From contig NIVC01000215.1 in the NCBI GenBank assembly GCA_002269645.1, positions 372,001-436,000 on the forward strand: a stretch of DNA of 64,000 nucleotides, in the 5' to 3' direction. The position numbers and the translations under genes are program-made. Source of the DNA: Macrostomum lignano (Eukaryota). The notes below the pieces were generated by a model that worked only from the letters and a program-made list of their open reading frames with translations, did no database searches and was not told the origin of the DNA. Shown here one piece after another: positions 19,094 through 53,163 of this stretch (position 1 is the first letter of the stretch; every line of letters begins with the position of its first letter).

Positions 19094-19094
19094 C

Positions 19095-19132
<38 letters not shown>

Positions 19133-19244
19133 CAGTAGTAGTAGTAGTAGCAGCAGTAGTAGTAGTAGCAGTAGTAGTAGTAGTAGTAGTAGTAGTAGCA
19201 GTAGTAGTAGTAGTAGTAGCAGTAGTAGTAGTAGTAGTAGTAGC

Positions 19245-19276
<32 letters not shown>

Positions 19277-19550: not shown

Positions 19551-19585
<35 letters not shown>

Positions 19586-21040: not shown

Positions 21041-21132
21041 TGACTTGACTTAGCTGCAGGGCTGTCCCGGAGGGGACACAGCGGGAAGGCGCGGGCGCCC
21101 ATTCCGCTAGTCCCTGAACGGCCGACGCGTCG

Positions 21133-24100: not shown

Positions 24101-24871
24101 ATCAAGGGCAGCCTTGTAGGCCGCCCAATCAGTGTTGCGGATATTGCGTCTCCAAGTGATCGGAGACTGGGTTTTAGTGTCCGCGATGTTAAAGGCGATA
24201 AAGCAGTGGTCAGACAGGGAGGGCTCCTCAGACCAGACTCTCCACTCCTCAACTCTGTCAAAGAGTCTTGGGGTAACGAGTGTGGCGTCGAGGACCTCGG
24301 TCCATCTGCCATTATTAAAGGTAGGAGTGCTGCCGCGGTTGCAGAGCATGAGGTTTGTGTTAGAGATGAGGGCCAGAAGCTCCTCTCCTCTAGTGTTGGT
24401 ATCTTTGCTGCCCCAGTGCTTGTGGTGCGCGTTGAGGTCGCCCCCTAAGCACAGCTCAGCGTTCTGGGACTCGCAGTACTGCGCAAGGCGCAGTAAACTC
24501 TCGGGAGCAGGGTCTCTGTCGCCTGGGATATAAACCGAGGCAACAAGACACGTACGCGGAGAGAAATGATTAGATTGGATGACGCAAAGGTCTCCATCAG
24601 AGAGATCAGTCCTCAGCCAAGCCTGGAGATGGCTAGCAGCGAGGATAGCCGCTCTAGGGCGGCTGTTCCCCGGGCCACACACATAAAAATCAGAGTAGCC
24701 AGAGGGAATGTTGGGCAACTTACCGTTGCGCATCCAGGGTTCCTGGATCAGGATGAGGCCTGGCTTGTACAGCTCAGCAATCTTCATCAGATTTACTGAC
24801 GCAGATACGCAATGCTGTAAATTTATTTGCAGACAGAATGTCGCTCCTTTGGCAGCGTGGAGCTTAGTCAT
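21133..24871 (-). pseudogene. ORF2 of the non-LTR element (endonuclease, reverse transcriptase, RNase H, CCHC-like finger) with three lesions
   Basis: APE motifs CLQINLQH, IQEPW, GDLNAHH and SDH; RT motifs PISLTS, LDIVGAFDNV, PQGGVLTPTLW and YADDV; RNase H motifs YTDGSK, SDSQAA and VPGHVGIRGNELAD; C-terminal CSFC...EHFVSIC. Lesions are a 1-bp frameshift near 22975, an in-frame TAG at 22761-22763 (likely from TGG), and a 1-bp frameshift in a T run near 21988. Confidence 0.9.
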
Positions 24872-24910
24872 ACTGTATTAAATGCAATATCTGGCTAGAG
24901 CCCAGGGCCA

Positions 24911-26420: not shown

Positions 26421-26939
26421 ATAAAAGGTTGGTGGGCTACCCTCAAAGGGGCGCGGTACCCACCCGGCCGCTCCACCTGACCGGGCAGTAGGCCAATAGC
26501 ACCCTCAAGGCTGGCCCGACACCAGGAGGGGGACCGCTTGCGACCGGACTACTCCCCGGCCTTCCAGCCCATCGGCACGGTCAACACCTTAGGCATTAGA
26601 GAGTACGTTGAGCAGTACCACGGCCTTCAGGTTGGCGAGCCAGACCCGCATACCCAAATTCGGCCGAAGCCACTGGATAGGGTCGCCAGCGCCGGAGCCC
26701 AGTCTGTCCAGCAGCCCTAGGGACTGCCTTGAACACACGCGGGGACGAGTACCCTGGGTCGACTTGCGAGACAGCGTGGGGGGGGGGTCTGCGGCTGCCA
26801 GAGGCAAATAGAGGGTGCAGACCTCCCACCAGCCTTGACCTGCTGAAGATAGGGGCAGGCGTGAAGCATCGCAGACCTTAGCCCATGGGCCTAGTCTGTC
26901 TCATACTTCACTGGCATGCTGAATACGCCTTCGCGTGAA

Positions 26940-27549
26940 TAGACCGCTTAGCAAATGCTTAAATGCACGCGCAACCGCTTTTCCTGCTCTACTTGTAGTA
27001 GTCTGTGTCAGACTCATTAGCACCAAATAATTATATTTTATGCTCTAAATATTAAACGATTTCTTGGAAAAAAACTAATAAAAAATAACAATTACAGGAA
27101 TGCTTGACGCATTCTACAATGATTATTCTTAGCGATATTACTAATCTGGCCGGCATCTGTCTCCTTGTCATTATTTTAGTCAATATGATTATTTTTATAA
27201 AACAAATTTGAAAGAGTGAAACAGGTTGCTTGTAGTAGTAGTAGTAGTAGTATGTAGGGGCATTTTGTGAAGTTTTTTGTATTAAAAAGGCTTATTTCTA
27301 GGCCGTTTATATGTTTAGTGTAGGCTGTTTATATCCCTGGTTAGTGTGTTTATTAAGTCCAATTTTGAATATTTATATCGTATAGGGTGTTTACATCGTC
27401 AAGTTTAAGGTGTTCATATCATCCAGCTTAGAGTCCAGATTTACTGGATAAGTAGTAATGGCAGTAGTAGTAGTAGAGGCAGTAGTAATAGTAGTAGTGG
27501 CAGTAGTAGCAGTAGTAGTAGCAGTAGTAGTAGTAGTAGTAGAAGTAGC

Positions 27550-27587
<38 letters not shown>

Positions 27588-27738
27588 CAGTAGTAGTAGT
27601 AGTAGTAGTAGTAGCAGTAGTAGTAGTAGTAGTAGTAGTAGCAGTAGTAGTAGTAGTAGTAGCAGTAGTAGTAGTAGTAGTAGTAGTAGTAGCAGTAGTA
27701 GTAGTAGTAGTAGTAGCAGTAGTAGTAGTAGTAGTAGC

Positions 27739-27770
<32 letters not shown>

Positions 27771-27795
27771 CAGTAGTAGTAGTAGTAGTAGTAGC

Positions 27796-27851
<56 letters not shown>

Positions 27852-29904
27852 CAGTAGTAGTAGTAGTAGCAGCAGTAGTAGTAGTAGTAGTAGTAGTAGC
27901 AGTAGTAATAGTAGTAGTAGTAGTAGTAATAGTAGTAGTAGTAGTGGCAATAGTAGCAGTAGTGGTAGTAGTCGTAGAAGTAGTAGAAGTAGTACGAGCT
28001 AGTAGTAGTACTAGTGGTAGTAATACATGTAGTTTTAATAGCAGCAATAGTAACTCACAAGCCAATAAAAAGTAAGAGTAAACCGTACGTGCAAACGACC
28101 ATCTTCCTCAATTTCTTTAATTGAACAGCTGCCTGTTAACACAACACAGCCGTCTTCAGTTCCATAGTTTACGATTAAAAGTATACAAACTTGCAATTAT
28201 ATTTGACCTAACAATTTACAAACTGAAACATAATCAACTAATTTTAGAATCGAAAAATGACGTTTTTTTCTTTAAAGCAAACAGCATATCGATGGGTTAC
28301 AAAAGCAGTAAAAATGCATTAGAAATTGGATTGCAAACTTTTATTCATAGCCTCGCGAAACGCAATTTATTAAAATATTTTCACTGACCCTAATGCACCT
28401 ATAGACCTGACCCCAAAACTCCTACAGACCTGACCCCAAAACCCCTACAGACCTGACCCCAAACCCCTACAGACCTGACCCCAAACCCCTACAGACCTGA
28501 TCCCAAAACCCCTACAGACCTGATCCCAAAACCCCTACAGACCTGAACCCAAAACCCCTACAGACCTGACCCCAAAACCCCTACAGACCTGACCCCAAAA
28601 CCCCTACAGACCTGACCACAAAACCCCTACAGACCTGACCCCAACCAATACCACTAGACCTGACCCCAAAACCCCTACAGACCTGACCCCAAACCCCTAC
28701 AGACCTGACCCCAACCAATACCACTAGACCTGACCCCAAACCCCTACAGACCTGACCCCAACCAATACCACTAGACCTGACCCCAAACCCCTACAGACCT
28801 GACCACAAAACCCCTACAGACCTGACCCCAACCAATACCACTAGACCTGACCCCAAAACCCCTACAGACCTGACCCCAAAACCCCTACAGACCTGACCCC
28901 AAAACCCCTACAGACCTGACCCCAAACCCCTACAGACCTGACCCCAAACCCCTACAGACCTGATCCCAAAACCCCTACAGACCTGAACCCAAAACCCCTA
29001 CAGACCTGACCCCAAAACCCCTACAGACCTGACCCCAAAACCCCTACAGACCTGACCCCAAACCCCTACAGACCTGACCACAAAACCCCTACAGACCTGA
29101 CCCCAACCAATACCACTAGACCTGACCCCAAAACCCCTACAGACCTGACCCCAAACCCCTACAGACCTGAACCCAAAACCCCTACAGACCTGACCCCAAA
29201 ACCCCTACAGGCCTGACCCCAAAACCCCTACAGACCTGACCCCAAACCCCTACAGACCTGACCACAAAACCCCTACAGACCTGACCCCAACCAATACCAC
29301 TAGACCTGACCCCAAAACCCCTACAGACCTGAACCCAAAACCCCTACAGACCTGACCCCAAAACCCCTACAGACCTGACCCCAAACCCCTACAGACCTGA
29401 CCCCAAACCCCTACAGACCTGATCCCAAAACCCCTACAGACCTGAACCCAAAACCCCTACAGACCTGACCCCAAAACCCCTACAGACCTGACCCCAAAAC
29501 CCCTACAGACCTGACCCCAAACCCCTACAGACCTGACCACAAAACCCCTACAGACCTGACCCCAACCAATACCACTAGACCTGACCCCAAAACCCCTACA
29601 GACCTGACCCCAAAACCCCTACAGACTTGACCCTAAAACCCCTACAGACCTGACCCCAAACCCCTACAGACCTGACCCCAAAACCCCTACAGACCTGACC
29701 CCAAAACCCCTACAGACTTGACCCCAAAACCCCTACAGACCTGACCCCAAAACCCCTACAGACCTGACCTCAACCCCCTGATCAGCTCAAGCTGATCACA
29801 CAGCACTACAATTCAAATGCAAAAAGCGCAGAAAGGCACCCGTTTGCTGCCGTCAGCACTCAGCAGAGCCACTCTGCAACAGTCAATACAAGCGCACATG
29901 GTCT
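26940..29904. repeat. Direct duplication copy A (2965 bp) flanking the retrotransposon 5' end; native 3' end of SNAPC3
   Basis: Matches 18037-21040 but has a shorter (GTA)n tract (about 27450-28010), a longer ACAGACCTGACCCCAAAACCCCT array (about 28400-29775) and a few substitutions. Confidence 0.95.
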
Positions 29905-32900
29905 CGTCAAACAGCTCGTCGCAATCTGAAATCAAAAGTTCAGCCCGAGCCGAGCGGCACAGCTGGCAGTCTCGGTAGGCAAAAGTCAACGAGGAGAAGC
30001 CGTGACTGAATCTGGCTAACGGCAGATTCTCGGGATCGGTCGCTGGATGCTTCAAGCTGACGTCAGAGAACACTATGATGTGCTCGCAGTTGGCCGCGTG
30101 CTGGTACAGGTAAAGCTCTCCTAGTCTCAAGGTTAGCGACGAGATTCTCGTAGATTCCATCGTGTGAGCAGTTAGTGATTCGCCAAATTCTTGTCTGGCT
30201 TTGGAGTTTTCCGACAGCCACTTCAACACCGTGGCGCTGAGTCGTCGGTTAAATGGTAATCGACAATCGTCATAGAGGCCAAGGCCGATGTGAAACATTG
30301 ACGAGGTGTACACGTCGCGACTGCGGGAGCAGCGCTCCGACATGGCCTGGCGAGGGTTGTCGCTGGACAGCTGGCGGTGGGGTTGCATGGTGAGGCGATT
30401 CTTAGAGTTAAGAGTGGTCTATAGGCGATTGCTAAAGACATTTAGAGACGATTCTTAGAGTGGTCTATAGGCGATTGCTAAAGACATTTAGAGGCGATTC
30501 TCAGGGTGGTTTAGGAGCGATTTCTTAAGACATTTATAGGCGATTCTCAGGGTGGTCTAAAGGCGATTGCTAAAGACATTTAGAGGCGATTCTCAGGGTG
30601 GTTAAGGAGCGATTTCTTAAGACATTTAGAGGCGATTCTTAGAGTTATTTAGGAGCGATTTCTAAAAAGCATACTACGAGTAGGTACTTTGCCTTTGGCA
30701 TAAAAGGAAGCAATAAGGCCATTGTTTTCCGATTCGAGATTAAATAATCCGTGCAGTTGTCCAGCTAAATTCTAAATAGCGGCATTCCTGCTACATTTAC
30801 TCATATGTTAATAAATTTCATAGGTAAGTTTTTGCAGTGCCCTATTCCGACCCTTTGTCAGTAGATGAATGCTGTTCAATAAGGCTGAATACATATAATG
30901 TAGCTGATGTAGAAGGCTGCGTACGGCTGTTCAGCCCAAGGACTGGGGGGTCGCCACACACCCACCAATTTTACAGCTGGGTGAACTGAAGCAATGCAGA
31001 GTTAAGTGTCTTGCTCAAGGACACTAATTGTTCCGAGTGGGATCCGGAATCGAACCCACGACCTTTAAGTCGTGAGTCCGATGCTCTGACCACTAGGCTA
31101 CCATCCCCCTCCTTCCCAGCATGGTCAATAGATACAGTCCCAGCACTGTCCCTTAAAATGGGCAATGACTTCAAGTTTTACATCTAAAATACACTACTAT
31201 GCTAGATGCTCCGAGCCCCCCGATAACCAAAGGCTAAAATGCCGGATTTTATCAATGAAAACTGAACAAAGAAAATTGCATGCAAGCTGCAGCCGGTAGA
31301 AATTGAATTCGAATGAAATACGTTCTTTATTAATATTCGTTTAGACCGTTAGAATTTTTGTATTGAAGTTATCATAAGTTTGTTATCGTGTCTGGAGTCT
31401 CACTGCAGCACAAACTTCACCCAGTCGTCGCTGTTCTCGATCTCCTGCTCAACCTGGGCGTCACTGAACTGCAGCAGTCGGCACTGGCCGAGGGCTTTGT
31501 TGTACAGCACGCTCCTGGTGTTCGGGACTTTGCCCAGTGCAGCCATGAGGCATTCAAGCACTTGGGTGACTTTATGCAGGTCGGTGTAACAGTACTGAGT
31601 GTTGTAATTAGTGCGTTTGAATGGCACCTTCACCCAGGTGGCAACTGGCGACTGGACGCGGTGAGGTGGAGCGAATTCGCAGGCGAATCCCTTGGCATCA
31701 AAGCAGCGCTGATCCACAAGCCGGTGGCTGTTGTCGTTCGCCTGTAACACGCAGTCCTGATTCCCGTTGCTGCTTGGCATTGAGCCGTACCACAGCGCAT
31801 TGTCCATCGGCAGCTTTCTGCCCATTTCAATAATCGAGATCTTTTGTTTTGCGTCGGGCCAACAAAAAAACTGCCATATCCCAATGCCACTGCCTGGCAT
31901 AACAGACAGAATTTCATTAGCTGAAAATCAACGAAGCTCTTTTCATCTTTGCCGACAGTGAATTATATCTACCGGTAGCTATTTATGTTTACATTTAGCA
32001 TGAAAGAACTGGCTTTTAGTGATCAGTCAAGACTGAGGAGTCATTTAGGGCTCCAATTGTTCGGCTTCCCTTTTTGACTATGCTGAGATGAAAAGAAAAA
32101 ATACTCATAATGAGATGCAGTTTTCCCTGAAAATATGTTTTCAAAAGAAGACATTGTTTTTAAGACAATAAATGTTGGTTGCCATGACAACTAAAATTCC
32201 ATTTTTATTACGTTTCCCCCCAAAATTGAATCGTAAAAATAAGTATTCATTATAACTGGACGTTAAATTATTATAGTTATTAAGCTGATTCTTAATGTGG
32301 TTCAGGGAAATTCTCAGGGTGGTTCAGGGGCGATTCTCAGGGTGTTTAGCGGCGATTCTCAAAGTAGTTTAGGGACGATTCTCAAGGTGGTTTGAAGGCG
32401 ATTCTCAGGATGGTTTAGGGGCGATTCTCAGGGTGTTTAGCGGCGATTCTCAAAGTAGTTTAGGGACGATTCTCAAGGTGGTTTGAAGGCGATTCTCAGG
32501 ATGGTTTAGGGGCGATTCTCAGGATGGTTTAGGGGCGATTCTCAAGGTGGTTTGAAGGCGATTCTCAGGATGGGTTGAAGGCGATTCTCAGGATGGGTTG
32601 AAGGTGATTCTCAGGATGGTTTGAAGGCGACTCTCAGGATGGTTTGAAGGCGATTCTCAGGATGGTTTAGGGGCGATTCTCAGGATGGTTTAGGGGTGAC
32701 TCTCAGGATGGTTTAAAGGCGATTCTCAGGATGGTTTAGGGGCGATTCTCAGGATGGTTTAGGGGTGATTCTCAGGATGGTTTGAAGGCGATTCTCAGGA
32801 TGGTTTAGGGGCGATTCTCAGGGTGGTTTGAAGGCGATTCTCAGGATGGTTTGAAGGCGACTCTCAGGATGGTTTGAAGGCGACTCTCATGATGGTTTGA

Positions 32901-35900
32901 AGGCGATTCTCAGGATGGTTTTAACAGTAGAACTACCAAGAGGGGGGGGGGAATCCCCCCCCTGACAATTTTTTGCTGCGCCGGAACGGAGCAACGCATG
33001 CACACGAAATTCAAAAACACAGGCTAACTTTTTGTTGCGCACCTTCTCAAACAAGAATCAAGTCGCCAGCCCTACGGACCGTTGAGATATTCGACGATTC
33101 TGCCAGAAGGTCGGATTTTTCCCATAACTGCTAGTGTATTCAGTACACCCCTGTGCGCCAAACAGCACTGCGCCTCAGTGCAGCCTTGCCAAGTCTCCAA
33201 ATTTCATCAGCACGTCGACCACATGTGTTTGCATCAGCTCTGACTTCGTTGGTCACTAGCCTTCACCAAGGTGGAGCTTCTGGACCCTCAACAGCTGTGG
33301 CATCAGGTGACTATGGACACCCTGATGCGGAATTCTCTAGTTTTGCCAATCAAGCCTCAGCAGTGGGCAAGAATCAACCGCCAGACATTCTCAGCTAGTC
33401 TCTCAAGCATTCCGTCATCATTTCGACGCCGTCGGCTCCTTCAACGGATTACACCAGGTGACTATGGACAGCCTGATAAGAATTTCTCTAGTTTCGCCGA
33501 TCCAGCCTCGACAGCGGGCAAAAATCAACCGCCAGACATTCTCAGCTAGTTTCTCAAGCATTCCGTCATCATTTCGACGCCGTCGGCTCCTTCAACGGAT
33601 TACACCAGGTGACTATGGACAGCCTGATAAGAATTTCTCTAGTTTCGCTGATCAAGCCTCGACAGCGGGCAAGAATCAACCGCCAGACATTCTCAGCTAG
33701 TCTCTCAAGCATTCCGTCATCATTTCGACGCCGTCGGCTCCTTCAACAGATTACACCAGTTGACTATGGACAGCCTGATAAGAATTTCTCTAGTTTCGCT
33801 GATCAAGCCTCGACAGCGGGCAAAAATCAACTGCTGGACATCCTCAGCTAGTCAGTCAAGCATTCAGCCATCACCCCGACGCCGTCGGCACCTTCAACAG
33901 ATTACACCAGGTGACTATGGACATCCTGTTGGAACTATGTCAGATTTTTCTTATTAAGCTTCAATAATGGGCAAACCTCAACTGCCGGACATTCTCAGCT
34001 AGTATCTCGAGCCTTCAGTCATCACCCCGACGCCGTCGGCACCTTCAACAGGTGGAACCAGGTGAGTAAGGACACCTGAGCGTGATTTTTCATCATGCTC
34101 TTAACATTTCTAAAGCTCTCAAAATTTTTTAAGCACTGGACATTGCTATAGTTAAGCTTGAACTCAAATTGGGTTCAATATTATAGTTGAATAAACTAAA
34201 CAGTTTGTCAAATAAAATATGTATGTAGCTCGCATGTATAAAAGTATGTGTAATAATAATATAAATATACAGCAACATGAGTTATGTATATTATTATCAG
34301 GATGGCTGGCTAAAAGGTAGACAAGAAGCAACATGACTGCAAGAAACCCACCAGTTCAGACACGTCGCCAACAATGACATCGTCCTGGCGGCAGCAGATC
34401 TGATCCTTCAGATCAGCCAGAGTGTGCCGGCCTTGCAGCAGAATGAGCTGACTGCAGCGCAGGTAGTTAGCAAAGGACCTGGCCACACCGCGCCCTCCAA
34501 CATCTGGCAGGGGAACGTACACCCGAACGGTCACTAGAAGGTCGTCCATCTCGCTAGGCGACAGAGGCTTAGCGAACTGCTTGACTGGCAGACTGGCTCT
34601 GTCGTGAGCGCACAGCAGTTCTATAGCGGGAAGCCGATCCCTGTTGTTGAGGAATCCTGACGCTGCTTTGGACAGCGGCTCCGAGTTTTGGCGCAACCTT
34701 CTCAGCGTTGCCAATGTTGAAATTTGATGGCGCGGATTGCGCAGAGAATTTGGGCTGAGGAAGCTGCACAGACCTGCGGGATTCGGGATGGCGCTGTGGG
34801 ATTAAATATGAGGGATTTTGAAAGGCTTCAGATACAATGGGATTTGGGAAGAAATAGGATTTTAGAATAGGATTTGAAAAAGATGGATTTTTACAATGGG
34901 ATTAGGGAAAAAATGGGATTAAACAATGGGATTAAGGAAGAAATGGGATTTTACAATGGGATTTGGGAAGAAATTGGATTTTACAATGGAATTTGGGAAG
35001 AAATGGGACTCTACAATGGGATTTGGGAAGAAATGGGACTTTACAATACAATGGGATTTGGGAAGAAATGGGATTCTATAATGGAATTTGGGAAGAAATG
35101 GGATTCTACAATGGAATTTGGGAAGAAATGGGATTCTACAATGGAATTTGGGAAGAAATGGGATTCTACAATGGAATTTGGGAAGAAATGGGATTCTACA
35201 ATGGAATTTGGGAAAAAATGGGATTTTACAATAGGATTTGGGAAGAAATGGGATTCTACAATGGGATTTGGGAAGAAATGGGATTTTACAATAATTTTTG
35301 GGAAGAAATGGGATTCTACAATGGGATTTGGGAAGAAATGGGATTTTACAATAGGATTTGGGAAGAAATGGGATTCTACAATGGGATTTGGGAAGAAATG
35401 GGATTCTACAATGGAATTTGGGAAGAAATGGGATTCTACAATGGAATTTGGGAAGAAATGGGATTCTACAATGGAATTTGGGAAGAAATGGGATTCTACA
35501 ATGGAATTTGGGAAGAAATGGGATTCTACAATGGAATTTGGGAAGAAATGGGATTCTACAATGGAATTTGGGAAGAAATAGGATTCTACAATGGAATTTG
35601 GGAAGAAATGGGATTCTACAATGGAATTTGGGAAGAAATGGGATTCTACAATGGAATTTGGGAAGAAATGGGACTCTACAATGGGATTTGGGAAGAAATG
35701 GGATTTTACAATACAATGGGATTTGGGAATAAATGGGATTTTACAATAGGATTTGGGAAGAAATGGGATTCTACAATGGAATTTGGGAAGAAATGGGATT
35801 CTACAATGGAATTTGGGAAGAAATGGGACTCTACAATGGAATTTGGGAAGAAAGGGACTCTACAATGGAATTTGGGAAGAAATGGGATTCTACAATGGAA

Positions 35901-36875
35901 TTTGGGAAGAAATGGGATTTTACAATGGAATTTGGGAAGAAATGGGATTTTACAATGGAATTTGGGAAGAAATGGGACTTTACAATGGTATTTGAGAAGA
36001 AATGGGATTTTACAATGGAATTTGGGAAGAAATGGGATTTTACAATGGGATTTGGGAAGAAAATGGGACTTAACAATGGGATTTGGGAAGAAATGGGACT
36101 CTACAATGGGATTTGGGAAGAAAATGGAACTCTACAATGGGATTTGGGAAGAAATGGGACTCTACAATGGGATTTGGGAAGAAATGGGACTTTATAATGG
36201 GATTTGAGAAACGGGATTCGACATGGAAGGGGATTTTATTCTACAATGGGATTGAGGATGAGATGGGATTTTTACGGTGGGACGAGAAATGGGAAGAAAT
36301 TATGGCTCTTCACCCAATAATACATGTACATGCAATATTTGCGAGCACCCTGGAGCAAAGCCTTTGGCGACCTCGTCACACAACCAGCTAGCGGTGAGGC
36401 AGTTCTGCCCATTCCACAGACTCCTTAGCACATACAAGCGCCCCAATACTGTACGCAGGCACGAGCTCACACCGGGTGTAGTTTAATTTGGGAAGTAGAG
36501 ACTTTAGACTGAGCAGAGACGGAAACAGTGATGAAGCATAGATCCAGTCTCACCCGTCAGGGGGGCATGGTTACTAGCGTCATCACCCTCGGCAGCGGCA
36601 TCGAGCAGGTCCCGCCTGACGGCATCCGGGTTGCACTCGGCAGCCAGGGCAGTCACGTCAACGTCGGGAAATTCTCGAGTCAGCTCCGTGAGCAGCTGAG
36701 ATTGCACAGCCGCTTCAGCTGTCGCCGTTGCAGTCTCCGTCGCCGTAGACGAAGTGGTTGAATCTGGAAACACCTCAGAGGCGGCATTCTGCATAGCCAA
36801 TAGTAGTTGACGAAGGTTCAACCAATCGGAATGAGGATGAATTGAGGTTTCGTCCTGAGGCTTAGTGTCAGACAT
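29813..36875 (-). CDS. SNAPC3: snRNA-activating protein complex subunit 3 (SNAP50/Pbp49), about 433 aa, 3 exons
   Basis: Exons 36875-36554, 34773-34352 and 30370-29813 with matching phases. Motifs ILLQGRHTLADLKDQICC, VYTSSMFHI, LRLGELYLYQHAANCEHIIVFSDV, CQLC and CIDC parallel the SNAP50 family pattern (LG.PYLY.H.G.CEH plus C-terminal zinc fingers). Confidence 0.9.
30395..30660 (+). repeat. GGCGATT-core tandem repeat next to the SNAPC3 exon 3 acceptor; same family as 32290-32920
   Basis: Alternating GGCGATTCTCAGGGTGGTTTA and GCGATTGCTAAAGACATTTAGA units. Confidence 0.8.
30910..31108 (-). mobile_element. tRNA-derived SINE with CORE-like domain, copy 2
   Basis: The minus strand shows A-box TAGCCTAGTGG, B-box GGTTCGATTCC, the same CORE-like block, and the same AGTCCTTGG(G/A)CTGAACAGCCGTA(C/T)GCAGCCTTC tail as copy 1. 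Confidence 0.8.
31400..31920 (-). CDS. C-type lectin domain (C-terminal half) plus degenerate PAN/apple-like domain; terminal exon or gene fragment nested in SNAPC3 intron 2
   Basis: LWYGSMPSSNGNQDCV...LVDQRC...FACE matches the CTLD pattern; ECLMAA...RSVLYNKALGQCRL is PAN-like. There is a TTTTCAG acceptor ending at 31921; upstream exons were not found. Confidence 0.65.
32290..32920 (+). repeat. 23-bp minisatellite (GGCGATTCTCAGGATGGTTTGAA)n
   Basis: About 27 tandem copies in SNAPC3 intron 2. Confidence 0.92.
33200..34075 (+). repeat. 151-bp tandem repeat, about 5-6 copies
   Basis: CACCAG(G/T)TGACTATGGACA recurs at 33453, 33604, 33755 and 33906 (period 151), with degenerate outer copies. Confidence 0.92.
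34830..36300 (+). repeat. 30-bp minisatellite (GGATTCTACAATGGAATTTGGGAAGAAATG)n in SNAPC3 intron 1
   Basis: About 47 tandem copies; explains the KKWDSTMEFG-type ORFs. Confidence 0.95.
36345..36480 (-). mobile_element. Degenerate antisense fragment of the 50990-51351 SINE
   Basis: CTGCCCATTCC..ACTCC..AGCAC..ACAAGCGC..CAATACTG matches the reverse complement of 51190-51320. Confidence 0.6.
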
Positions 36876-37049
36876 TGTTGCGTTGAGATTGATACAGTTC
36901 TTCTTTGCATGAAATATTGTAAATGCAAAATAAATATTGAACATATTTAGGAATTACAAAGACAAATTACTGTTGCGCATTCTTTGGGACTTCTTAGAAT
37001 GGTTTGGTTCGTATGTACATTTGGGTTGGGTAGGGTATTATATGTACAT

Positions 37050-37290
37050 AGGAGTAGAGATAGAATTGGCCTTAAGTGTATACATTGGGGTAGGGATAGG
37101 GTTGGCCTCGAGTGTACATCGGGGTAGGGATGGGGTTGGCCTCGACTGTACATTAGGTAGCGATGGATGAGTGTACATCGGGGTAGGGATGGGGTTGGCC
37201 TCGACTGTACATTAGGTAGCGATGGATGAGTGTACATCGGGGTAAGGATGGGGTTGGCTTCGACTGTACATTCGGGTAGCGATGGGGTGG
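37050..37290 (+). repeat. 59-bp tandem repeat between SNAPC4 and SNAPC3
   Basis: GTGTACATCGGGGTA recurs at 37112, 37171 and 37230; its core is shared with the 43670-44150 array. Confidence 0.85.
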
Positions 37291-38020
37291 GTCTTGGGTT
37301 TTTTGGCCTGTTTTATGACAAATAATTCAACCAGTAATAAAATTTACGATTGCTATATTATATAAAAAAATTATGACTGTGACTGCATCTCAGATTAATT
37401 TGTGCTTGTGATCAAACACACTGAATACAGATGGAGATTGTTAAAATGCCTTTATTATATGGGAGAAACAATGCAAGGTAAAAAATAATTTTTTTTACCC
37501 CTCTCTAAATTTTTTTGAGAGGAAAACAGCGACGCCACGATAGAAAACAAATTACAACACGAACAAATACTATTAGCGCTGGCATAAACTACGCATTTAA
37601 TAATATTACGCTAATAGTAAATAGAAAATTAACTTGCAATTTAATGAATTTGGACAGAAACTGTTAGTCTGCTATGCCTTATCTTAAAATTTACACTGTT
37701 GGAAGTCGCTAGGAAAAACTTGAAACCTCCTTACTAGACTGTACTTTTAGAAAACCCAATAGAAAACACTTGCAGCTTTTATCTAATATGTACTTTTCTA
37801 ATAATTGGTAGAAAAAGTCGCAACCTTCTTTTAATTAAAATTTTCCATTTGAAGAAACCCAGAACATACTTGCAAGCACAATCAAATGAGAATGTACTTT
37901 TTAAGGTAATAAACAAGCTTAAATATAAGTCTTGGGGCATATAAAACTTTGCAATGTCCCTGCCCCCAGTATACAAAGAATTGTTTTCAATATCCATTAA
38001 ATTCACTTTAACAGTCAGAG

Positions 38021-39558
38021 TTAGGAGTCAATAGCAGCTTCATCTTTTTGATCAGCGTCATGTCCAGCGGCAGCAGCCTCAGACTGTGGCAGCAGGCAAG
38101 ACTGAGGCCGATAGCCCATAGCAACCAGTTGCAACAGTTCGCTAGGCACAGTAATCAATTCACCGTTGCCAAGAGCAACGTTAACTAATGAATCTAATCG
38201 ATAATCTCCAACAACGCATTCGGTTTTGAATTGTTGCAGGTCTTTAGCTGTTAATCGTTTGCGGTTCAACTGATTTGGGCTCAGCTCCTGCTGCAGTTGA
38301 TTCTTCTTTTCTCTTCGAAGTCGCCGTTCGCTCATTTTGCCGACGCAACGCGCGTGAGACGAGTTGGCCGGCACCAAGTGTTTGGGTTTGGGCAGCAGGA
38401 AATGCCGCGGATCAAGTAGGGAGCGCATGCTGCTGACCGCGACGCCGCGGGAGGCGTTGCCGCCGCCGCCGCGGTTCAACTCGGACCGGTCGGCTCGGGC
38501 AGTCAAATGCGACGCAGGCCGATGCTCAACCAGCTGTTGTTGTCGAGTTTCGCTAGCCGCGACATCGTCGTCAAACGATTCTAATTGCAGCTCCTCTTGG
38601 CTGAGAAAGTCCGGAGCTCGAGCCCGACAATCGGCGAAGCTCATGCCGGACAGCACAGCTGGCCAAGCGAATAGCCGGTGAAACTTGTCGCCTAATTCTT
38701 GCCAGCCCCTGTCAACATCGTTGTCGTCGTCGTCACCTGCGTCTATCGACTGTCGGAGCAGCCGCTCGCGACTGCTCAACAGGCGCCGAAACGCCGACGC
38801 TGTTGACATATTTAACGGCATCGGCGGCGCGTCGGTGTCGGCCAGATAGACGCGGAAGAATTCCGACACTCGCTGGGCGCAGTTGCGACGCCGTTTTAGC
38901 AGGTCGCCGCCCGACGAATCGCCGAGAATGCGACAGACAGGCGGCAGGCGGTAGCGACGAACTGGCAGGTCGAGTAGGCGAGTTTTTGTTGCCAGGCGGC
39001 TGGCTATTCGATTAGCTAGAGCTCGCTTGGCGACAGCGTCAGGCGTGTCGTCCTTCGGAGCATCGATCAATTCTGCGGCGGTGACGTCACCGTCTTCTTC
39101 GACATCGTTGTCGTCGTCTACCAGCATGGTGACGTCATCCGTCTCTTTTTCAACAAATGCGCTATCAGAAACGTCATCGTCGGCGTCCAAATCGACGTTT
39201 GGCTCGACGGCGGGGTCAGGTCGGTGTCGCTTCTTCGGTCGAGTCGATTCGTCGCCCTCGAAAGTCGCTGAGGCCGTTGCTGCCGTTAAGCGCCGTTTTT
39301 TAGCGGCCTGCGCCGATTTTAAAGACGCTGGCAAGGTCGGCGGCGGCTCCTTTGGCGCTGCTGTGGACGTCAAGGCCACATCGGGATGGGCGGCGTTAGT
39401 TGCGGCCCCGGACGACTGCTTGGATGGCGATGAGGCGAGCGACTGCAAAGGAAGCAGATTATGATAGGGTGCACGTTTTTTCCACTGATTGCTTACCTAA
39501 GGCAGACAAAGCAGTGCGGGCCTGACACTAAGACAGACACTGAGACAGACAGACACTA

Positions 39559-39645
<87 letters not shown>

Positions 39646-39692
39646 TAGACAGACACTAAGACAGACAGACAGACAGACAGACAGACACAGAC

Positions 39693-39743
<51 letters not shown>

Positions 39744-39842
39744 CTAAGACAGACAGACAGACAGACAGACAGACACTAAGACAGACAGACAGACAGACAG
39801 ACAGACACTAAGACAGACAGACAGACGGACAGACAGACACTA

Positions 39843-39895
<53 letters not shown>

Positions 39896-42800
39896 CTAAG
39901 ACAGACACTAAGACAGACAGCCAGATTCCAAGCTAATTAAACAAAAGAGCCTCACCAGAATGGACTGAACAATCTGGGGCACCATAGCCCTGTACTGGCG
40001 CACGGTTTTGCACCGATCGAAGCGAGTTTTCAGCTGCGGAGCCTCCATAGCCGTCTGCAAAGTGAGCCACAGTCGGTCCTCAGACTCCGGCAGCAGTAGT
40101 TCGCGCAAGCGCAGTCGAGTTGCCTCGTCGAAATTTTGCCGATTTACCGACTGCGTCAAAGCGGAAACAATCGGCCGCCACAGGGCCGCCTTCGCAGTGG
40201 CGTCTCGTCGGAGTTTTTCAAGTTTGAAACGACTGTTGGTGACCTTGCCGGGCAGAGGGCGCGGCAGGAGAAAGCCTTCGTCAGCGTCCATAAGAAGCTG
40301 CGGGTGTTGTTCAGAACAGCCAGTAAAGAATGTGCAGTGTTTTTCTTCCTAGGTGTACACTATTTATGGTTGTAGTGGTAAGGTACTGCCTGATAACTCT
40401 GTGCCCCAGATGTGCATTATCGGGGGGTTGTGGGGGAAAGGGGTTTGACTGATAACTCTCTGCCCCAGATGTGCATTATCGGGGGGTTGTGGGGGAAAGG
40501 GGTCTGACTGATAACTCTCTGCCCCAGATGTGCATTATCGGGGGTTGTGGGGGGAAGGGGTCTCGCTGATAACTCTCTGCCCCAGATGTGCATTATCGGG
40601 GGTTGTGGGGGGAAGGGGTCTCGCTGATAACTCTCTGCCCCAGATGTGCATTATCGGGGGTGTAGGGGGGAAGGGGTCTCGCTGATAACTCTCTGCCCCA
40701 GATGTGCATTATCGGGGGTTGTGGGGGGAAGGGGTCTCGCTGATAACTCTCTGCCCTAGATGTGCATTATCGGGGGTTGTGGGGGGAAGGGGTCTCGCTG
40801 ATAACTCTCTGCCCCAGATGTGCATTATCGGGGGTGTAGGGGGGAGGCGTCTGGCTGAAAATTCCTAGCTCCCCTAAGTAACAGACCAACCTGCGACAGC
40901 TCCTCCTTTGACGCAGCAGTTGGCTCCTGTTTTAATGTAGCTGCCACCTGCTGCTGCTGTTGGTCCCCTCCACTTCCGCCAGAGTTGCAGTCGAGAAAGC
41001 CGCCACTAGCCAGCAGTTTAGCCATCAACGGCGTCCTTAGCAACAATCGCCGAGTGTCATCGCCAACTCCAACAGAGGCTTTGACGCGTTCCCACACTAG
41101 GCTAGACAGCACCAGCTGGCGCCAACGCCAGGCTAAACCGGGCGCGCTTCTACCGGGAAACATTGACAATAAATCAGTCCAGCAGATATTATAAACTTGA
41201 AGATCGATAAATTTTTGTACCGCCAATCGTATCGATTTTTGACTATGACCCTGGGCAATGTTCCGCTTGACGAGGTCTTGCAGACTGGTTGGCTGCGGCA
41301 CCAGCAGGAAGAGGCGGCGGTCGTCTGCGTAGCTCCAAGGCGGCTGGTCTCGGGTGAGCAAGTGATCCACGGCTTTGCGGCAGGCCAGGTCGGTGCTGCG
41401 CAGTGTCAGAAGGGGGGGGGGTAATGAGAGGCTTGGCGTGCGGGTCAGGGGAGAGGGAGATGGGGAAGAGCGAGATGGGGAGGAATAGGGAGAGGGAGAA
41501 GGAGAGGGGTGTTGATGGGGAGAGGGAGAGTAGGGAGAGAGACAAGGGAGAGGGAGACAAGAAAGATGAAGAGAAGGGAGAGGGATAGAAGGAGGGATAA
41601 AGGAGGAGAGATAGAAGGAGGGATAAAGGAGGAGGGATAGGAGGGATAAAGGAGGAGGGATATGAGGGATAAAGGAGGGATAGGAGGAGGGATAAAGGAG
41701 GAGGGATTGGAAGAGGAGAAATAGATGGAGGAGGAGGGAGACAAGGGAGAGGGAGAGGAGAGGGAGACGGAGGGAGATGGGGGAGGGAAGAGTGTAAATC
41801 GGGGATGTGGTACAAAGAGAGAAGTGACAGGTGATGGAGTACAATTGCGGGCACATTAACAAACGATAAGTTATAAACAGAGCCTCAGAATAGAAAATGC
41901 AGTCAAACGATCTGGCAAAATTAAAGAGTAAAAATTCAATTTAAGAAACACCCATAACCATGCCCAGCCGACTCACCGAGTGCCGACGTATTGAGCAATT
42001 CGAAAAAATCGAAACGGCCCGAACTGGTCAACTGCCATCAACAGTCGCAGCCGATCGCTAGCAGGCCAATCATAACCCAAATCTGGAGCCAATGAGCGCC
42101 ACAGCTCTGATGCAGCTCGATGCGATTTCGGGTACAGCTTGAGTTGCATCGACACCTGACGCCAGTCAATTCTGCCGGTGGCCTGGATGAATGGAAGCAG
42201 AATCTTTCTACACTGAGTGACCTAAGTCTGTTATTTGGAGGGTTCTATTGCGGGGGCGTCAGAGGCTCCAGCACCAGAGGCGCCAGCACCAGAGGCGCCA
42301 GCACCAGAGGCGCCAGCACCAGAGGCGCCAGCACCAGAGGCGCCAGCACCAGAGGCGCCAGCACCAGAGGCGCCAGCACCAGAGGCGCCAGCACCAGAGG
42401 CGCCAGCACCAGAGGCGCCAGCACCAGAGGCGCCAGCACCAGAGGCGCCAGCACCAGAGGCGCCAGCACCAGAGGCGCCAGCACCAGAGGCGCCAGCACC
42501 AGAGGCGCCAGCACCAGAGGCGCCAGCACCAGAGGCGCCAGCACCAGAGGCGCCAGCACCATGGACATCCCATCTTGTCCCGCACTGCACACAAAACCGC
42601 ACCTGAGTAGCAATGGACTCGTTAACAGCGGACACCACAGACGCCGCGGCCACCGTCTCACTGCTGGCTTCGGCCGGCGCTGGCAACTGCTGCTCCTGAA
42701 TGCGCGACCTGCGATGCCGGGACAGCCAGCGTTGGGCGCAGGCCAGCGGAGGTCGCACCTTGCCCTGGGATGAACTCAGTGCCGCTGACACGGCGCCCCA

Positions 42801-45199
42801 GTTGCGTTCGCCCAGCTCATCAACCAGAGCGATTAGACGAGCATCCTCTGCACGTTTCCATGCCGACCTGGTTGATGGGTGGATTGAGTTATTAGCAGCG
42901 ATTTTTGACGGATTTTAAGGATTTTTAATTGGACATTGGTGACTTAGGACTAGGGATTAGCAATCAGGGACTACAGATTAGCGATTAGGGACAATGGATT
43001 AGCGACTAAGGACAATGTATTAGCGATTAGGAACTAGGGATTAGTGGTTAGGGACAAGGGATTAGTGATTAGTGACTAGAGATTAGTGCTAAGGGTGTAG
43101 TGATTAGTGATTAGGCAGTCAGTCAAATGAATCACTCACGAGTCAATGCCAGGCCTGAGCACATTGGCGTACGCCAGTCTCAAACTCCGAGCGGTGAGCT
43201 GCACAATGCCGGTGCTTGGTCTCTGCCCTTCTAAGTCCGACAATACCGCGTCGAAATTGATGAGGCCAGCACCGCCACTTGGTCCTTCGGCAGCCAGTCT
43301 GCCCAGCAACTGATCTGTGCTAGAATTTTGCAATCGTTTAATCTCCGAGTCCAGCTCGGCCGCGGCTATTCGAGTGGACTTAATGGCCGACGATACAGCG
43401 GCCGAGCTGCGCATCCGTTCGGCCAGTCCGGCCTGACGGGACAGCAGAGGCCGGAGTCGAGTCTCCCGATAAAATTCTGCCACTAATTGCAGAAGTTTTT
43501 TCAGACATCCCTGCCTGTTTGACAGACTGGAAACTTTGCCGGTGTACAGCGCCGAGCTGCCAGCAAAGGTGGCCAGATTGGCCAGACACAGCTCCGCCCG
43601 GTTGCGCTTTTGAAGGCCGTCAGCGTTTGGCGGGCAAACAATTCTGGGTGTGCGGTGGCGAGCGGGGAGGCCAAGTGTACATTGGGAAAGGGGTAAGATT
43701 TTTTAAAGCTAGTGTACATTGGGGGTGGAGATTTATTGAAGCTAGTGTACATTCAGAGTAGAGATTTTTTGAAGCTAGTGTACATTGGGGTAAGAGATTT
43801 TTTAAGCTAGTGTACTTGGGATAGAGATTTTTTAAGCAAGTGTACATTGGGGGTAGAGATCTTTAAAGCTAGTGTACGTTGGGGGTAGAGATTTTTCAGC
43901 TAACGTACATTGAGGGTAGAGATTGTTTGAAGCTAGTGTACATTGAGGGTAGAGATTGTTTGAAGCTAGTGTACATTGGGGGTAGAGATTTTTAAAGCTA
44001 GTGCACATAGGAGGCGTAGAGATTTTTTAAAGCTAGTATACATTGGGGGTGATTTTTAAAAGCTAGTGCACATTGGAGGCGTAGAGATTTTTTAAAGCTA
44101 GTGTACATTGGGGGTAGAGATTTTTTAAGGCTAGTGTACACTGATAGTGTACATTAGGGATAGAGATTCTTTAAGGTTCACCAACCTTGAGTTTCCTGAA
44201 TCGTAGACGGAGAAAAACGGCGACCTAATCAGACCCCGTCTGGCCAGTCGCAGCTGCGGCAGCCGGCCGCCACCCAGCAGCATCGAAGCTGAGGCCGCCC
44301 CGGCAGCAGCTTCGTGATCGTCGCTAGCGGCTACACCCGGTGCTCCAGCACCATAGCCCAGCGACAGCATCAACTGACAGCTGGTGCCAACGTCCCCGAG
44401 TTTCTCGGCGTCGCCTTCCAACGCCGACTTGCCTGCGGCCACTTCGCTGATGCGAGATTCTACTCGGCGAAGGCACTCGGCAACGAGCTCCTAGGAGGTT
44501 GAAAATATGGAAGATATGGAGGATACTATCGCGGGATATTAATTCCCCCTACAATGGGATAAAAGTTCCCTCTACAATGGGATAGTGATTCCCCCTACAG
44601 TGGGATAATAATTCCCCTACGATGGGATAATGATTCACTCTACCATGGGATAGTGATTTCCCCTACTATCGGATAAGAATTCACCCCTCTAATGGGATAA
44701 TGAAATGATCCCCCCTATAATAGTATAATGATTCCCCTCTACAATGGGACAATGATCCACCACAATGGAATAATGATTCCCCCTACAATGAAATTATTTC
44801 CTACAATTGGAGAATGATTCCCCTTACAATGGGATGATGATTCCCCCTAAAATTGGATAATGATTCCCCTACAATGAGATAATAATTATGCTACACTGGG
44901 GCAATGATTCTCCCACAAAGAGCTAATGTCTTCACACCATGAAACACGAATTGCTGTCATACACATACCTGCAAAGTCTGATTGATAACCAGCACAGTCT
45001 CAGCATCGCAGGGAATTTCCCCATCCTCGGCATTGCGCAAAGCAATCAACAGGCTGGAGGCTTTGAAGTCAACCTCATCTTCTGGATTGTCAAAATATTC
45101 CTCTGGATTTTGATTGCCACTGTCTATGGCATTATTGCCTTCTATTGGTGCAGCCTTCTCACACTTGGCTGTGACCAAGTGATTTTCAGGGTTGATGTC
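38021..45199 (-). CDS. SNAPC4: snRNA-activating protein complex subunit 4 (SNAP190/Pbp95), multi-Myb protein, about 1272 codons over 8 exons; no in-frame ATG in the first exon
   Basis: Exons 45199-44969, 44490-44186, 43643-43140, 42867-42603, 42221-41977, 41395-40891, 40297-39956 and 39442-38021, all phase-consistent. N-terminal motifs [17 protein letters not shown]...CPPNAD and [15 protein letters not shown] parallel SNAP190. These are followed by serial Myb repeats ([10 protein letters not shown]...NWGAV...CAQRW; [18 protein letters not shown]...GTRTDLACR; [10 protein letters not shown]...[12 protein letters not shown]...WRW) and basic NLS-like KKRR clusters. Confidence 0.87.
39530..39920 (+). 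repeat. (GACA)n microsatellite in the last SNAPC4 intron
   Basis: Read directly. Confidence 0.95.
40385..40845 (+). repeat. 58-59 bp G-rich tandem repeat in a SNAPC4 intron
   Basis: CTGATAACTCTCTGCCCCAGATGTGCATTATCGGGGG... about 8 copies. Confidence 0.92.
42270..42560 (+). repeat. 15-bp minisatellite (GCACCAGAGGCGCCA)n in a SNAPC4 intron
   Basis: About 19 perfect copies between donor 42602 and acceptor 42222. Confidence 0.95.
43670..44150 (+). repeat. About 32-bp minisatellite (AAGCTAGTGTACATTGGGGGTAGAGATTTTTT)n in a SNAPC4 intron
   Basis: About 14 degenerate copies. Confidence 0.88.
44530..44905 (+). repeat. 23-bp minisatellite (GATTCCCCCTACAATGGGATAAT)n in the first SNAPC4 intron
   Basis: About 16 degenerate copies; shares the CTACAATGGGAT core with the 30-bp array. 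Confidence 0.85.
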
Positions 45200-48100
45200 C
45201 TGCAGTTATTTTTGATACATATTGGATCATTTAGTTTCTAATTAGGACATACCAAGACATTTTTTCTGCCTTACATTGACAATGTTTTGCTACACCAGAA
45301 TAGAGCAATGCAGGTACATAAAATTTAAGAACATAAGCTAACTTTTTGATGCACACCTTTTTAAACAAGAATCAAGTCACCAGACCCCCAGAGTGTGACA
45401 CTTCTGCCAAATCAACAATCAACAATTCTGCCAAAAGAACAGATTTTTTCTATAAGTGCTAGTGTATTTACAATGTATCCTTCTGTGCCAAATAGCAGTG
45501 TCTTAGTATAGCCTCAAGATACCCAACTGCAAAATTTTTTCCAATATCACTAAATAAGCATCAATGATTGGAAAACCTAAATTATTGTAAATATTTAGTT
45601 AATCTCTTAAGCATTCATTCATCAGATGGCAGAATTATGGGTATCCAAAGAAGATTTTACCATTAAATTCATGTATACATAATAGTTTTATAACTATATA
45701 ATAGAGGCTATAGTACTTTAATGCTAATATATAGAGATGGGAAAAAAAAGAAACAAAAAGTCTATTAGTCAAAGGCTAAGCAATAAATATTAGAAAATTT
45801 AAATAAATTCATATAAAGATATAAATATTCATTTAAATCAAATATACAATATATATAGTATATATATTTCTATAAAACAAGCCAATTAATACAATTTCTA
45901 TTAGTATCAATATAATTATCATACAAATAGGAAGTCCAAAAAATTCCTTTTTTATTATGAACTTAAAACTTAATATAAATATTATTATTAAGTAAAGTCC
46001 CAATTTAAAGATGGAATATTTAAGTGAGTGATTATTCAGTTTTCATAGTTAATGATAGCATAAAAAAACATGTTGCCAATTATGAGTTAGATAGGTCACT
46101 ATAAAAATTATAAATATAAGGTTTAAACTTTTAAATGTTAGCTTGCCAAACATTTTTAGAGCCAAATAAAATTCAAATCATAGGACATAGCTACAACCTG
46201 CAAGCTGAGATGAAAAGAAGAGAATGAATAGGTCTAAAGACAAAGGGAAAGATAAGAGATAATAAAAGAAAAATATGTAGAAAATAGGGGTTAGACAATA
46301 TACATTTTTGAGATTTATGCTTTCAAGGTAATTGAGATTTGATAGAGATTAAAGATTAAGCCAAATTAGTATCTAATAGGCCTATGTTGCTATCTAGCAA
46401 TAGAATATATTCTATCTAGCAATACTAATATTAGGCCTATTATTTGTTAAATATATATGCCTCCTGTCTATAATGATAAGCCTAATAATAAAAGGAAAAT
46501 CAACTTATATAATATTGAGCTTATTGCTATGTCAGTAACTTGGTGTATATCAAATATAAATATAATAATATTGTAGTCACCAATAGTTATATAGTCACAA
46601 ATATTGACTTTTTTAGATCTTAAAACTGAGATCAAGATTGAAAAAGTGCTTAGATCTTGACAATCAAGATCAATATCTTGTTTGACCTTTAGTGAGAAAA
46701 GAGACATGGTCATGAGAGGATTTATAAATTATAATAAAATAATGTTTGGGTTTTTTGCTGGCAACAAGATGCAAAAGGCTACAGGTCAGAAGACAATAGA
46801 TCAAAAAGGTGATCCTAGTCAAAAGGGCAATAGTCACAAAGATAATTAGTCAAAAAGGCGACAGGTAGTAGATTTATTGAAATTATAAGTTCCGTGCATT
46901 AGAAGCTTATATTGGTTAAAATTTACAAGTAGTAAATTGTTAAATTTTATTTGTTATATTTGTTGAAAGCATAAGCAGTTAAAATGTATTTGACTTGTAT
47001 TTATTGAGATGTATTTGTTAAAATGTGGTTAAGTGAGGTCTATTTATTTTACTAACTGCCTTCAGTAGATCATCCACTGAGTGTAAAGGGCAGCTTTCTT
47101 TAATTTAGATGTAGTAACCATTTAGCACTTGTATGGTCTTATGAGAGTAATGAATTAAATAAAATCCCACTAAACTAACCATGTTTTTATGTACATTAAT
47201 GTACATATATATGCAGAATACCAACATGTACAATTCTAATACATCAAACTATTGTATATTTTAACAAATACATATACAAGTACAAATAGGCCTACATAAA
47301 CAAATACAAGTCTAATACCTTATTGCCCTTATGACTGTGGCCCTTTTGATCTGTCGCCTTTTGATTGGTTCCTGATGCAAAATTGCATTCAAGACCATAA
47401 GGTCCAATTTCAAGATGTTATTTGGAAAGTCAATTCTAAATGCACTTCCTAGTACAGCTGGGGCTTGGACTTGTTGGGCCCACAGTCTCCTGCGCTACCA
47501 GGTAGAACCGATTGGATAGGGGCCAGGTCAAGCAAACCTGCAGACTTGCGAAGACAACCTTTCAGCCATCCTCGCCTGTTGCACTCACGCCGCTGCTGGA
47601 TACGCTGGTGGAGACTTCCGGTAGAGACATCCCTCAGACCCTGGATGAAATTCTTGCAGAAAAATCACAACGCATTATGCAATTGCGCGAAAAAATGCAA
47701 TTTTGCGTCAAAAAATCCAGAAAAAATGTGTTGCAGAATTTCAGACAAAATTGCTAATTTTTAATATATGCAAAAGTGCGCTTGAGATATTGGATTTTGC
47801 AAAAAAGATAATCCTACTAGCTAAGATCACAAAGAAAAAAAGAATAAAAACTAAAAACTGAAAAAGGCACAAAAGTAAAAATTTGAAAAAATTCCATAAA
47901 AGTAGAAACTTGTAACATTTGATATCTAACATATATATTTAAATGAAAATTCAAATCACTACATTTTCTTAGAATGCATTTTTGTTATTGTCTTATTGAT
48001 TACTTTTAGGCCCTACCATTTTGCGACGTGCTAAGTACCAAAATAAAAAATGCAACCAATAAAAAGTATTTTGCGTGCCATAAAAAAATTGCATAATTCC

Positions 48101-53075: not shown

Positions 53076-53163
53076 GCCTGCCTGTCACCTATCAATACTT
53101 CACCCTATTCCCACTAAAAGCCGATTTGCAGGCCCCAGCACCGCCGCCAGCACACCAACTCGC

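Follow-up and report, generated by a model that had tools for sequence, protein, structure and literature searches.

On the minus strand of a 64,000-nucleotide stretch of the genome of the free-living flatworm Macrostomum lignano (GenBank contig NIVC01000215.1, assembly GCA_002269645.1, Mlig_3_7; hereafter the window, in which a coordinate plus 372,000 gives the record coordinate), a gene that is probably the orthologue of SNAPC4 (SNAP190) lies head-to-tail with a gene solidly assigned to SNAPC3 (SNAP50), the two encoding predicted partners within SNAPc, a transcription factor of snRNA genes. The arrangement of the pair is one that, by position, has been classed as an operon in M. lignano, and there is a slightly better than even case, from sequence and annotation, that the two genes are co-transcribed as one unit. 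Window positions 28021-55196 are identical to NIVC01000215.1:400021-427196 (100%, ungapped, 27,176 bp), where the GenBank annotation gives, in order along the window minus strand, a protein kinase, PAA87835.1 (Myb) and PAA87834.1 (SNAPC3). Independently built models, of eight exons for the SNAPC4-like gene and three for SNAPC3, translate to PAA87834.1 exactly and to PAA87835.1 apart from its first residue. An earlier note on this DNA had proposed the pair, and its gene positions and strand were re-found (stop at 38021, SNAPC3 ATG at 36875, gap of 1145 bp, SNAPC3 end at 29813); its overall span of 45199-29813 holds as coordinates, but 45199 directly follows a CTGCAG acceptor and is not a start codon. 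The features of the two genes, with the upstream neighbour last, are as follows.

45196-38021, minus: PAA87835.1 (BOX15_Mlig029422g1), SNAPC4-like, annotated 'partial', 1258 aa (GenBank)
45208-45206, minus: TAA stop just upstream of the CTGCAG acceptor
45200..45205, minus: CTGCAG splice acceptor directly upstream of SNAPC4-like exon A, fitting the [T/C]TNCAG motif (sequence; motif from PMC8629364)
44969..45199, minus: SNAPC4-like exon A, open from its first base, without an in-frame ATG (exon model)
44186..44490, minus: SNAPC4-like exon B, with the first in-frame Met at codon 118 of the model (exon model)
43140..43643, minus: SNAPC4-like exon C, ending in a half Myb repeat, Rh-like (exon model)
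42603..42867, minus: SNAPC4-like exon D, a canonical Myb repeat, Ra-like (Pfam Myb_DNA-binding)
41977..42182, minus: SNAPC4-like exon E, an Rb-like repeat and the beginning of an Rc-like repeat (Pfam; alignment to human SNAPC4)
40891..41395, minus: SNAPC4-like exon F, the rest of the Rc-like repeat and an Rd-like repeat (alignment; exon model)
39956..40297, minus: SNAPC4-like exon G (exon model)
38021..39442, minus: SNAPC4-like exon H, the last, closed by a TAA at 38023-38021 (exon model)
36899-29813, minus: PAA87834.1 (BOX15_Mlig020528g2), SNAPC3, annotated 'partial', 441 aa (GenBank)
36554..36899, minus: SNAPC3 exon 1, with ATG at 36875-36873, open from 36899 (exon model)
34352..34773, minus: SNAPC3 exon 2 (exon model)
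29813..30370, minus: SNAPC3 exon 3, whose stop codon ends at 29813 and which encodes the bulk of the Pfam SNAPC3 domain along with the Cys/His residues (Pfam; exon model)
51888-49955, minus: protein kinase, 332 aa, on the same strand 4.75 kb upstream of the SNAPC4-like gene (GenBank annotation)

The identity of the downstream gene is solid, with the Pfam score, the match to the human structure, the nearest relatives and the invariant residues all agreeing on the SNAPC3 orthology first proposed. The product scores 105.6 bits against Pfam SNAPC3 (PF12251; gathering cut-off 23.8, E=3.6e-30), with positions 3-23 of the 199-position profile covered by exon 2 and positions 24-196 by the last exon, and its sole PDB match is human SNAPC3 (7xur_B, E=1.4e-17; query residues 215-431 against chain residues 201-402, 217 residues). 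It keeps 15 of the 17 columns that are invariant across 25 orthologues, among them C189, H284, C288, H290, C325, C328, C352 and C355, and every invariant Cys/His (zinc-finger) column is retained. When 1.8 billion representative proteins were searched, the closest non-self relatives were flatworm and insect SNAPC3 proteins (Paragonimus, Taenia/Echinococcus and Thrips), and a protein whose cluster is from M. lignano itself matched SNAPC3 exons 1-2 at 100%. A second copy of the final 91 nt of SNAPC3 coding sequence (29813-29904) lies at about 20950-21040, within a segment of about 2.6 kb that is present in two copies, 94-95% identical, at 18400-21040 and 27263-29904; between these copies, just downstream of SNAPC3, lies a non-LTR (long terminal repeat) retrotransposon with endonuclease, reverse transcriptase and RNase H (21100-26500, minus).

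Orthology of the upstream multi-Myb gene to SNAPC4 is probable rather than proven. The modelled product has 1259 residues with a Myb array at about residues 300-620, in which Pfam detects two significant Myb stretches, and its Ra-Rb-Rc repeats align collinearly with human SNAPC4 residues 289-464 over ∼170-190 residues (HMMER, and BLASTP against PDB). Among solved structures, SNAPC4 is the sole collinear match over at least three repeats (171-190 residues), matches to c-Myb spanning a single repeat. An Rh-like half repeat and an Rd-like repeat, recognised by eye only, flank Ra-Rc, and Rb is degenerate; Myb arrays of 4.5 repeats are known from no class other than SNAP190-like proteins (PMC9652321). 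Scores separate the candidates less clearly than does the extent of alignment, as one PDB search placed SNAPC4 ahead (E=4.9e-6 vs 9.6e-5 for c-Myb), while the search with the correctly spliced model left the two tied (c-Myb E=1.5e-4, human SNAPC4 E=2.1e-4). The N-terminal region of SNAP190 binds SNAP43/SNAP19; here the N-terminal 299 residues returned no PDB match at E<=10, NCBIfam gave no match, the residues aligned to the base-contacting positions of human Rc are not conserved (by eye), and the AlphaFold model of the Myb region (predicted local distance difference test, pLDDT, 44.5) was too poor for a fold search. An array with a 15-bp unit at 42260-42561 would be in frame with exon D if read through.

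Against human SNAPc (SNAP190/SNAPC4, SNAP50/SNAPC3 and SNAP43/SNAPC1), the M. lignano pair shares the SNAPC3 domain with its Cys/His residues and a Myb array collinear with SNAP190 Ra-Rc, but the N-terminus of the SNAPC4-like protein has no detectable sequence similarity to the human protein. The direct binding of SNAP190 to SNAP50 is confirmed for the human proteins, which contact each other and jointly bind the PSE promoter element (PMC9652321).

The sequence that separates the two genes contains the signals on which an operon would depend, with the following features.

36876..38020, minus: gap between the coding sequences, 1145 bp, 35.8% GC, without an annotated gene on either strand
37451..37456, minus: AATAAA, the only canonical poly(A) hexamer of the gap, conserved in all three genomic copies
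37043..37288, strand-neutral: minisatellite, 246 bp, 59-bp unit (TRF)
36900..36904, minus: AG acceptors (AAAG|AAG|AAC), a candidate spliced-leader (SL) trans-splice site; the GenBank SNAPC3 coding start at 36899 follows directly after the second AG

The minus-strand AATAAA noted near 37455 is present at 37456-37451 and, as read from the sequence, is likely the 3'-end signal of the SNAPC4-like mRNA; the gap also holds three ATTAAA hexamers. The description of the gap as AT-rich, with a T-rich tract ending in AG 24-27 nt before the SNAPC3 ATG, was likewise reproduced, with AG dinucleotides at 36904-36903 and 36901-36900, respectively 27 and 24 nt before the ATG, following an AT/T-rich tract. The absence of an obvious upstream donor was nearly right, the gap holding a single GT[AG]AG match, GTAAG at 37734. 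Measured from the SNAPC4-like stop to the annotated SNAPC3 coding start, the gap is 1121, 1571 and 1630 bp in the three copies of the locus in the assembly, and the differences are almost wholly in minisatellite copy number. Minisatellites are a general feature of the locus: exons are GC-rich and introns AT-rich and minisatellite-filled across the region, and between 29000 and 45000 nearly every intron of both genes, as well as the gap, holds its own distinct minisatellite, with units of 12-151 bp in arrays of up to 1.4 kb.

Assignment of an operon in M. lignano has required same-strand neighbours, a repeat-adjusted distance below 1 kb and trans-splicing of the downstream gene (PMC8629364). 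At all three loci the SNAPC4-like and SNAPC3 genes are on the same strand with no gene between them (GenBank tables, and an open reading frame (ORF) scan of the gap), and the gap after removal of TRF repeats is at most about 875-900 bp (1121 - 246 = 875), or about 285 bp counted from the AATAAA, in either case below 1 kb. The locus resembles the SL operons described for the species in having adjacent same-strand genes, a downstream 5' end at an AG and a repeat-laden spacer of less than 1 kb when adjusted, and its two-gene size is that of the commonest class, which makes up 75% of operons (PMC8629364, PMC5730564). The flatworm with SL trans-splicing and many operons that had been presumed as the source of this DNA is borne out (PMC8629364, PMC5730564), and an operonic arrangement as such is not exceptional, since operons hold about 15% of M. 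lignano genes, at a modal spacing of about 100 bp (PMC8629364). For parasitic flatworms, operons have been called where genes lie <=300 bp apart or where a gene model is chimeric (PMC12582326); the distance here is in excess of that limit (1121-1630 bp vs 300 bp), and chimeric models are present.

Two UniProt entries from an earlier assembly, A0A1I8ILV2 and A0A1I8IV96, representing two different paralogous loci, fuse SNAPC4-like exons to SNAPC3 at the same junction, from 38165 (a GTGAAT donor-like site in the last exon) to 36908, giving the protein junction VALGN|AKKNC. These models may be artefacts; the junction could stem from a cDNA artefact, from a difference between assemblies or from an RNA that is rare but real. 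Immediately before the chimeric exon boundary (36908-36925 region, minus), 9 nt read TATTTCATG and match the 3' end of the SL (TATTGCATG) at 8/9, which may be chance in AT-rich sequence or a cause of imprecise 5'-end calls; the boundary at 36908 also agrees with where two of the three SNAPC3 models in GenBank begin their coding sequence.

The third element of the definition, trans-splicing, is approached through the annotated 5' ends. M. lignano uses a single 35-nt SL ending ...TTGCATG, which is added to transcripts of about 30% of genes at acceptors enriched for [T/C]TNCAG (PMC8629364), and the Mlig_3_7 annotation pipeline trimmed the SL and cut transcripts at SL and poly(A) sites (PMC5730564). 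Each of the three GenBank SNAPC3 coding sequences is annotated as 5'-partial and opens no more than 6 nt from the AG acceptors at 36904-36900, and the acceptor predicted at 36899-36902 coincides with a GenBank 5' end; an in-frame stop lies upstream at about 36956, and the annotated SNAPC3 transcripts must therefore begin at the acceptor. All three SNAPC4-like coding sequences are flagged partial too, beginning at the CTGCAG acceptor or one codon later. Partial coding sequences placed at AG acceptors in this way fit SL trans-splicing of both genes. A scan of the whole window for YTNCAG was uninformative, the motif being too degenerate.

At the SNAPC4-like 5' end the sequence reads TAA and then CTGCAG|GAC, with exon A in phase 0, and exons A and B contain no stop in frame 0 (7 and 9 in the other frames) and the first 117 codons include no ATG. 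Given this ATG-less opening, the phase 0 of exon A and the AUG at the end of the SL, the SL AUG probably initiates this ORF; the SL would be added at 45199 and its terminal AUG would serve as the start codon of the SNAPC4-like protein. Initiation at an SL-donated AUG is documented in Schistosoma (Cheng et al. 2006, cited in PMC9851317), and with such SL-AUG-initiated flatworm ORFs the SNAPC4-like gene shares a phase-0 first exon after the acceptor, a stop just upstream and the long ATG-less opening, but differs in that use of the SL AUG is here deduced from annotation and sequence. The SL AUG would be in frame with SNAPC3 as well, where the gene's own ATG follows eight codons further on; exact look-up of full-length SNAPC3 starting from the SL AUG (442 and 443 aa) or from an upstream ATG (456 aa) found no entry in the protein collection. 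The idea that a mini-exon farther upstream (ATGTCTTGGTAT|GT, about 45260) provides the SNAPC4-like ATG was rejected, the good donor of that mini-exon being out of frame and its sequence not conserved in the paralogous locus.

Taken as one unit, the locus would be expressed in four steps. Transcription would begin somewhere in the 4.75-kb region upstream of 45199, which is unique, AT-rich and almost without tandem repeats and is plausibly a promoter together with an outron. The 5' outron would then be exchanged for the 35-nt SL at CTGCAG, with the SL AUG opening the SNAPC4-like ORF (...TTGCATG|GACATCAAC). The polymerase would read past the SNAPC4-like poly(A) signal, probably the AATAAA at 37456, and a second SL trans-splice at 36904-36900 would release and cap the SNAPC3 cistron, with the outcome that two subunits known to contact one another and, jointly, to bind the PSE would be expressed in a coupled way. 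In the SL2-type operons of Caenorhabditis elegans, upstream 3'-end formation and downstream SL trans-splicing resolve the polycistron, which sometimes holds functionally related genes. The proposed M. lignano polycistron would be resolved likewise, but with a single SL in place of a specialised SL2 and with longer, repeat-filled spacers.

Several observations weigh against a single transcription unit. Gaps of 1121-1630 bp are far above the ∼100-bp mode of M. lignano operons, the adjusted spacer of about 285-900 bp is also longer than that mode, and the SNAPC3 acceptor is an AAG without the YTNCAG motif, which occurs nowhere in the gap. The chimeric junction implies a non-canonical GT..TG intron, for which reason the fused models may be artefacts. 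A TATA-like TATATAA is found in the gap at 37364, and the non-repeat portion of the gap (36900-38020) diverges by only 1.2-1.8% between paralogous loci, less than in the SNAPC4-like gene at third codon positions (3.0%), in SNAPC3 intron 2 (3.9-4.7%) or in the sequence preceding the SNAPC4-like gene (4.4-7.4%). In all three assembly copies the kinase comes first, then the SNAPC4-like gene, then SNAPC3 (GenBank gene tables), but the copies are recent duplicates, 97-98% identical, and hence not independent conservation. Finally, comparison of SNAPC3 loci with 10-kb flanks in Taenia solium, Paragonimus skrjabini miyazakii, Anoplocephala perfoliata and Schistosoma japonicum found no SNAPC4-like sequence within 10 kb of SNAPC3 in any of the four (annotation and tblastn).

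What these four parasitic flatworms have in its place is MOZART1 (PF12554), directly downstream of SNAPC3 on the same strand in every case, at a spacing of 141 bp in Anoplocephala (where MOZART1 is unannotated), 213 bp in Taenia solium and, more widely, about 1.4 kb in S. japonicum; the Paragonimus annotation merges both into a single gene model, and at least five species have such fusions. The same-strand pairs occupy the following parts of the loci retrieved.

L001:10001-12792: SNAPC3-MOZART1 pair, parasitic flatworm
L006:10001-11883: SNAPC3-MOZART1 pair, parasitic flatworm
L007:10001-18695: SNAPC3-MOZART1 pair, parasitic flatworm
L002:9947-25782: SNAPC3-MOZART1 pair, parasitic flatworm

Across tapeworms and flukes, SNAPC3-MOZART1 has the look of a conserved candidate operon, and no mention of it was found in the 2025 flatworm operon paper or its supplements (PMC12582326). 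As in M. lignano, SNAPC3 sits in a same-strand pair with fused models, tight in the tapeworms (141-213 bp), but in those species it lies upstream and is joined by a gene of unrelated function, whereas in M. lignano it lies downstream; a search of the M. lignano window for MOZART1 was negative. On these comparisons, either the SNAPC4-SNAPC3 pairing is confined to the Macrostomum lineage, or parasitic flatworms have lost it. Neither the supplements of M. lignano and flatworm papers nor a search for the gene identifiers gave any mention of SNAPC genes, and in the papers that could be searched this pair has not been singled out.

The pairing may be a lineage-specific accident, operonic or not, that was never selected for subunit balance, an explanation given an even chance and one that is compatible with co-transcription. 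With operons holding so large a share of the genes and complexes being numerous, some partner pairs would be expected by chance, and this one was picked from a scan of many windows, which invites a look-elsewhere effect. The human SNAPC4 and SNAPC3 genes, at 9q34 and 9p22, are in practice unlinked and are monocistronic. The change of partner to the unrelated MOZART1 in the parasitic species and the recency of the M. lignano duplicates, which excludes independent retention, point the same way. Against accident stands the contact between the two products and their joint binding of the PSE (PMC9652321), which makes coupled dosage plausible.

Two separate units, with a SNAPC3 promoter inside the 1.1-kb gap and a short outron removed by SL trans-splicing, would leave the adjacency as at most a shared chromatin context, and this is rather doubtful. 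Trans-splicing would sit comfortably with it, as only about 40% of the M. lignano genes subject to SL trans-splicing have been assigned to operons (PMC8629364) and most thus lie outside them; so would a gap roughly 10 times the modal intercistronic distance, the TATA-like element, and the 19 ATGs of the gap, which outron trans-splicing could remove. The unique gap sequence, better conserved than third codon positions, the intron and the SNAPC4-like upstream region, could represent a promoter, and could also represent intercistronic signals, an untranslated region or a gene-conversion tract; the low paralogue divergence extends over SNAPC3 exons 1-2 at all three codon positions, so that gene conversion may account for it. 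The repeat-adjusted distance below the published 1-kb cut-off and the two gene models that fuse both genes argue for co-transcription instead. It is improbable that the upstream gene encodes some other multi-Myb protein, which would leave no SNAPc pair here: the equal c-Myb score, the unmatched N-terminus, the two significant Pfam stretches, the unconserved Rc contacts and the unusable structure prediction would allow it, but collinearity over at least three repeats is seen only with SNAPC4, and the length of the protein and the position of its Myb array fit the SNAP190 layout, 4.5 repeats being known only from that class (PMC9652321).

If the SNAPC4-like and SNAPC3 genes are co-transcribed, they offer a clean animal example of an operon coupling two contacting subunits of a basal transcription factor, and since transgenesis is possible in M. 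lignano, the role of an operon in subunit stoichiometry would be testable there. The case is illustrative and sets out no new principle, because operons are common in the species and the pairing does not extend to the parasitic flatworms. Among the testable elements the newest is that the SNAPC4-like gene is a candidate for an essential protein with an SL-supplied start codon. To our knowledge, SNAPc-driven transcription of SL RNA is known only from nematodes and trypanosomes. Were it to extend to M. lignano, expression of SNAPc would depend on its own product, both subunits maturing from one SL-processed precursor, the SNAPC4-like protein needing the SL AUG, and SNAPc transcribing the SL RNA, in a positive feedback loop coupling trans-splicing capacity to SNAPc dosage; this is speculation, stacking an extrapolation from nematodes and trypanosomes on another inference, and is very unlikely. 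An Rfam search of the window returned no RNA family, and so no SL RNA or small nuclear RNA gene, and the SL sequence is absent from the window at up to 3 mismatches.

Elsewhere in the window, a gag/aspartyl-protease retroelement fragment occupies 1-1601 (minus), and an intermediate-filament/lamin-like gene, recognised by eye only, spans 3900-16000 (plus) with repeat-filled introns. Upstream of the kinase, 53134-55196 (plus) carries an annotated 516-aa product that is largely tandem repeat, and exons at 61800-63450 (plus) resemble, again by eye only, a PPIP5K/VIP1-type inositol pyrophosphate kinase.

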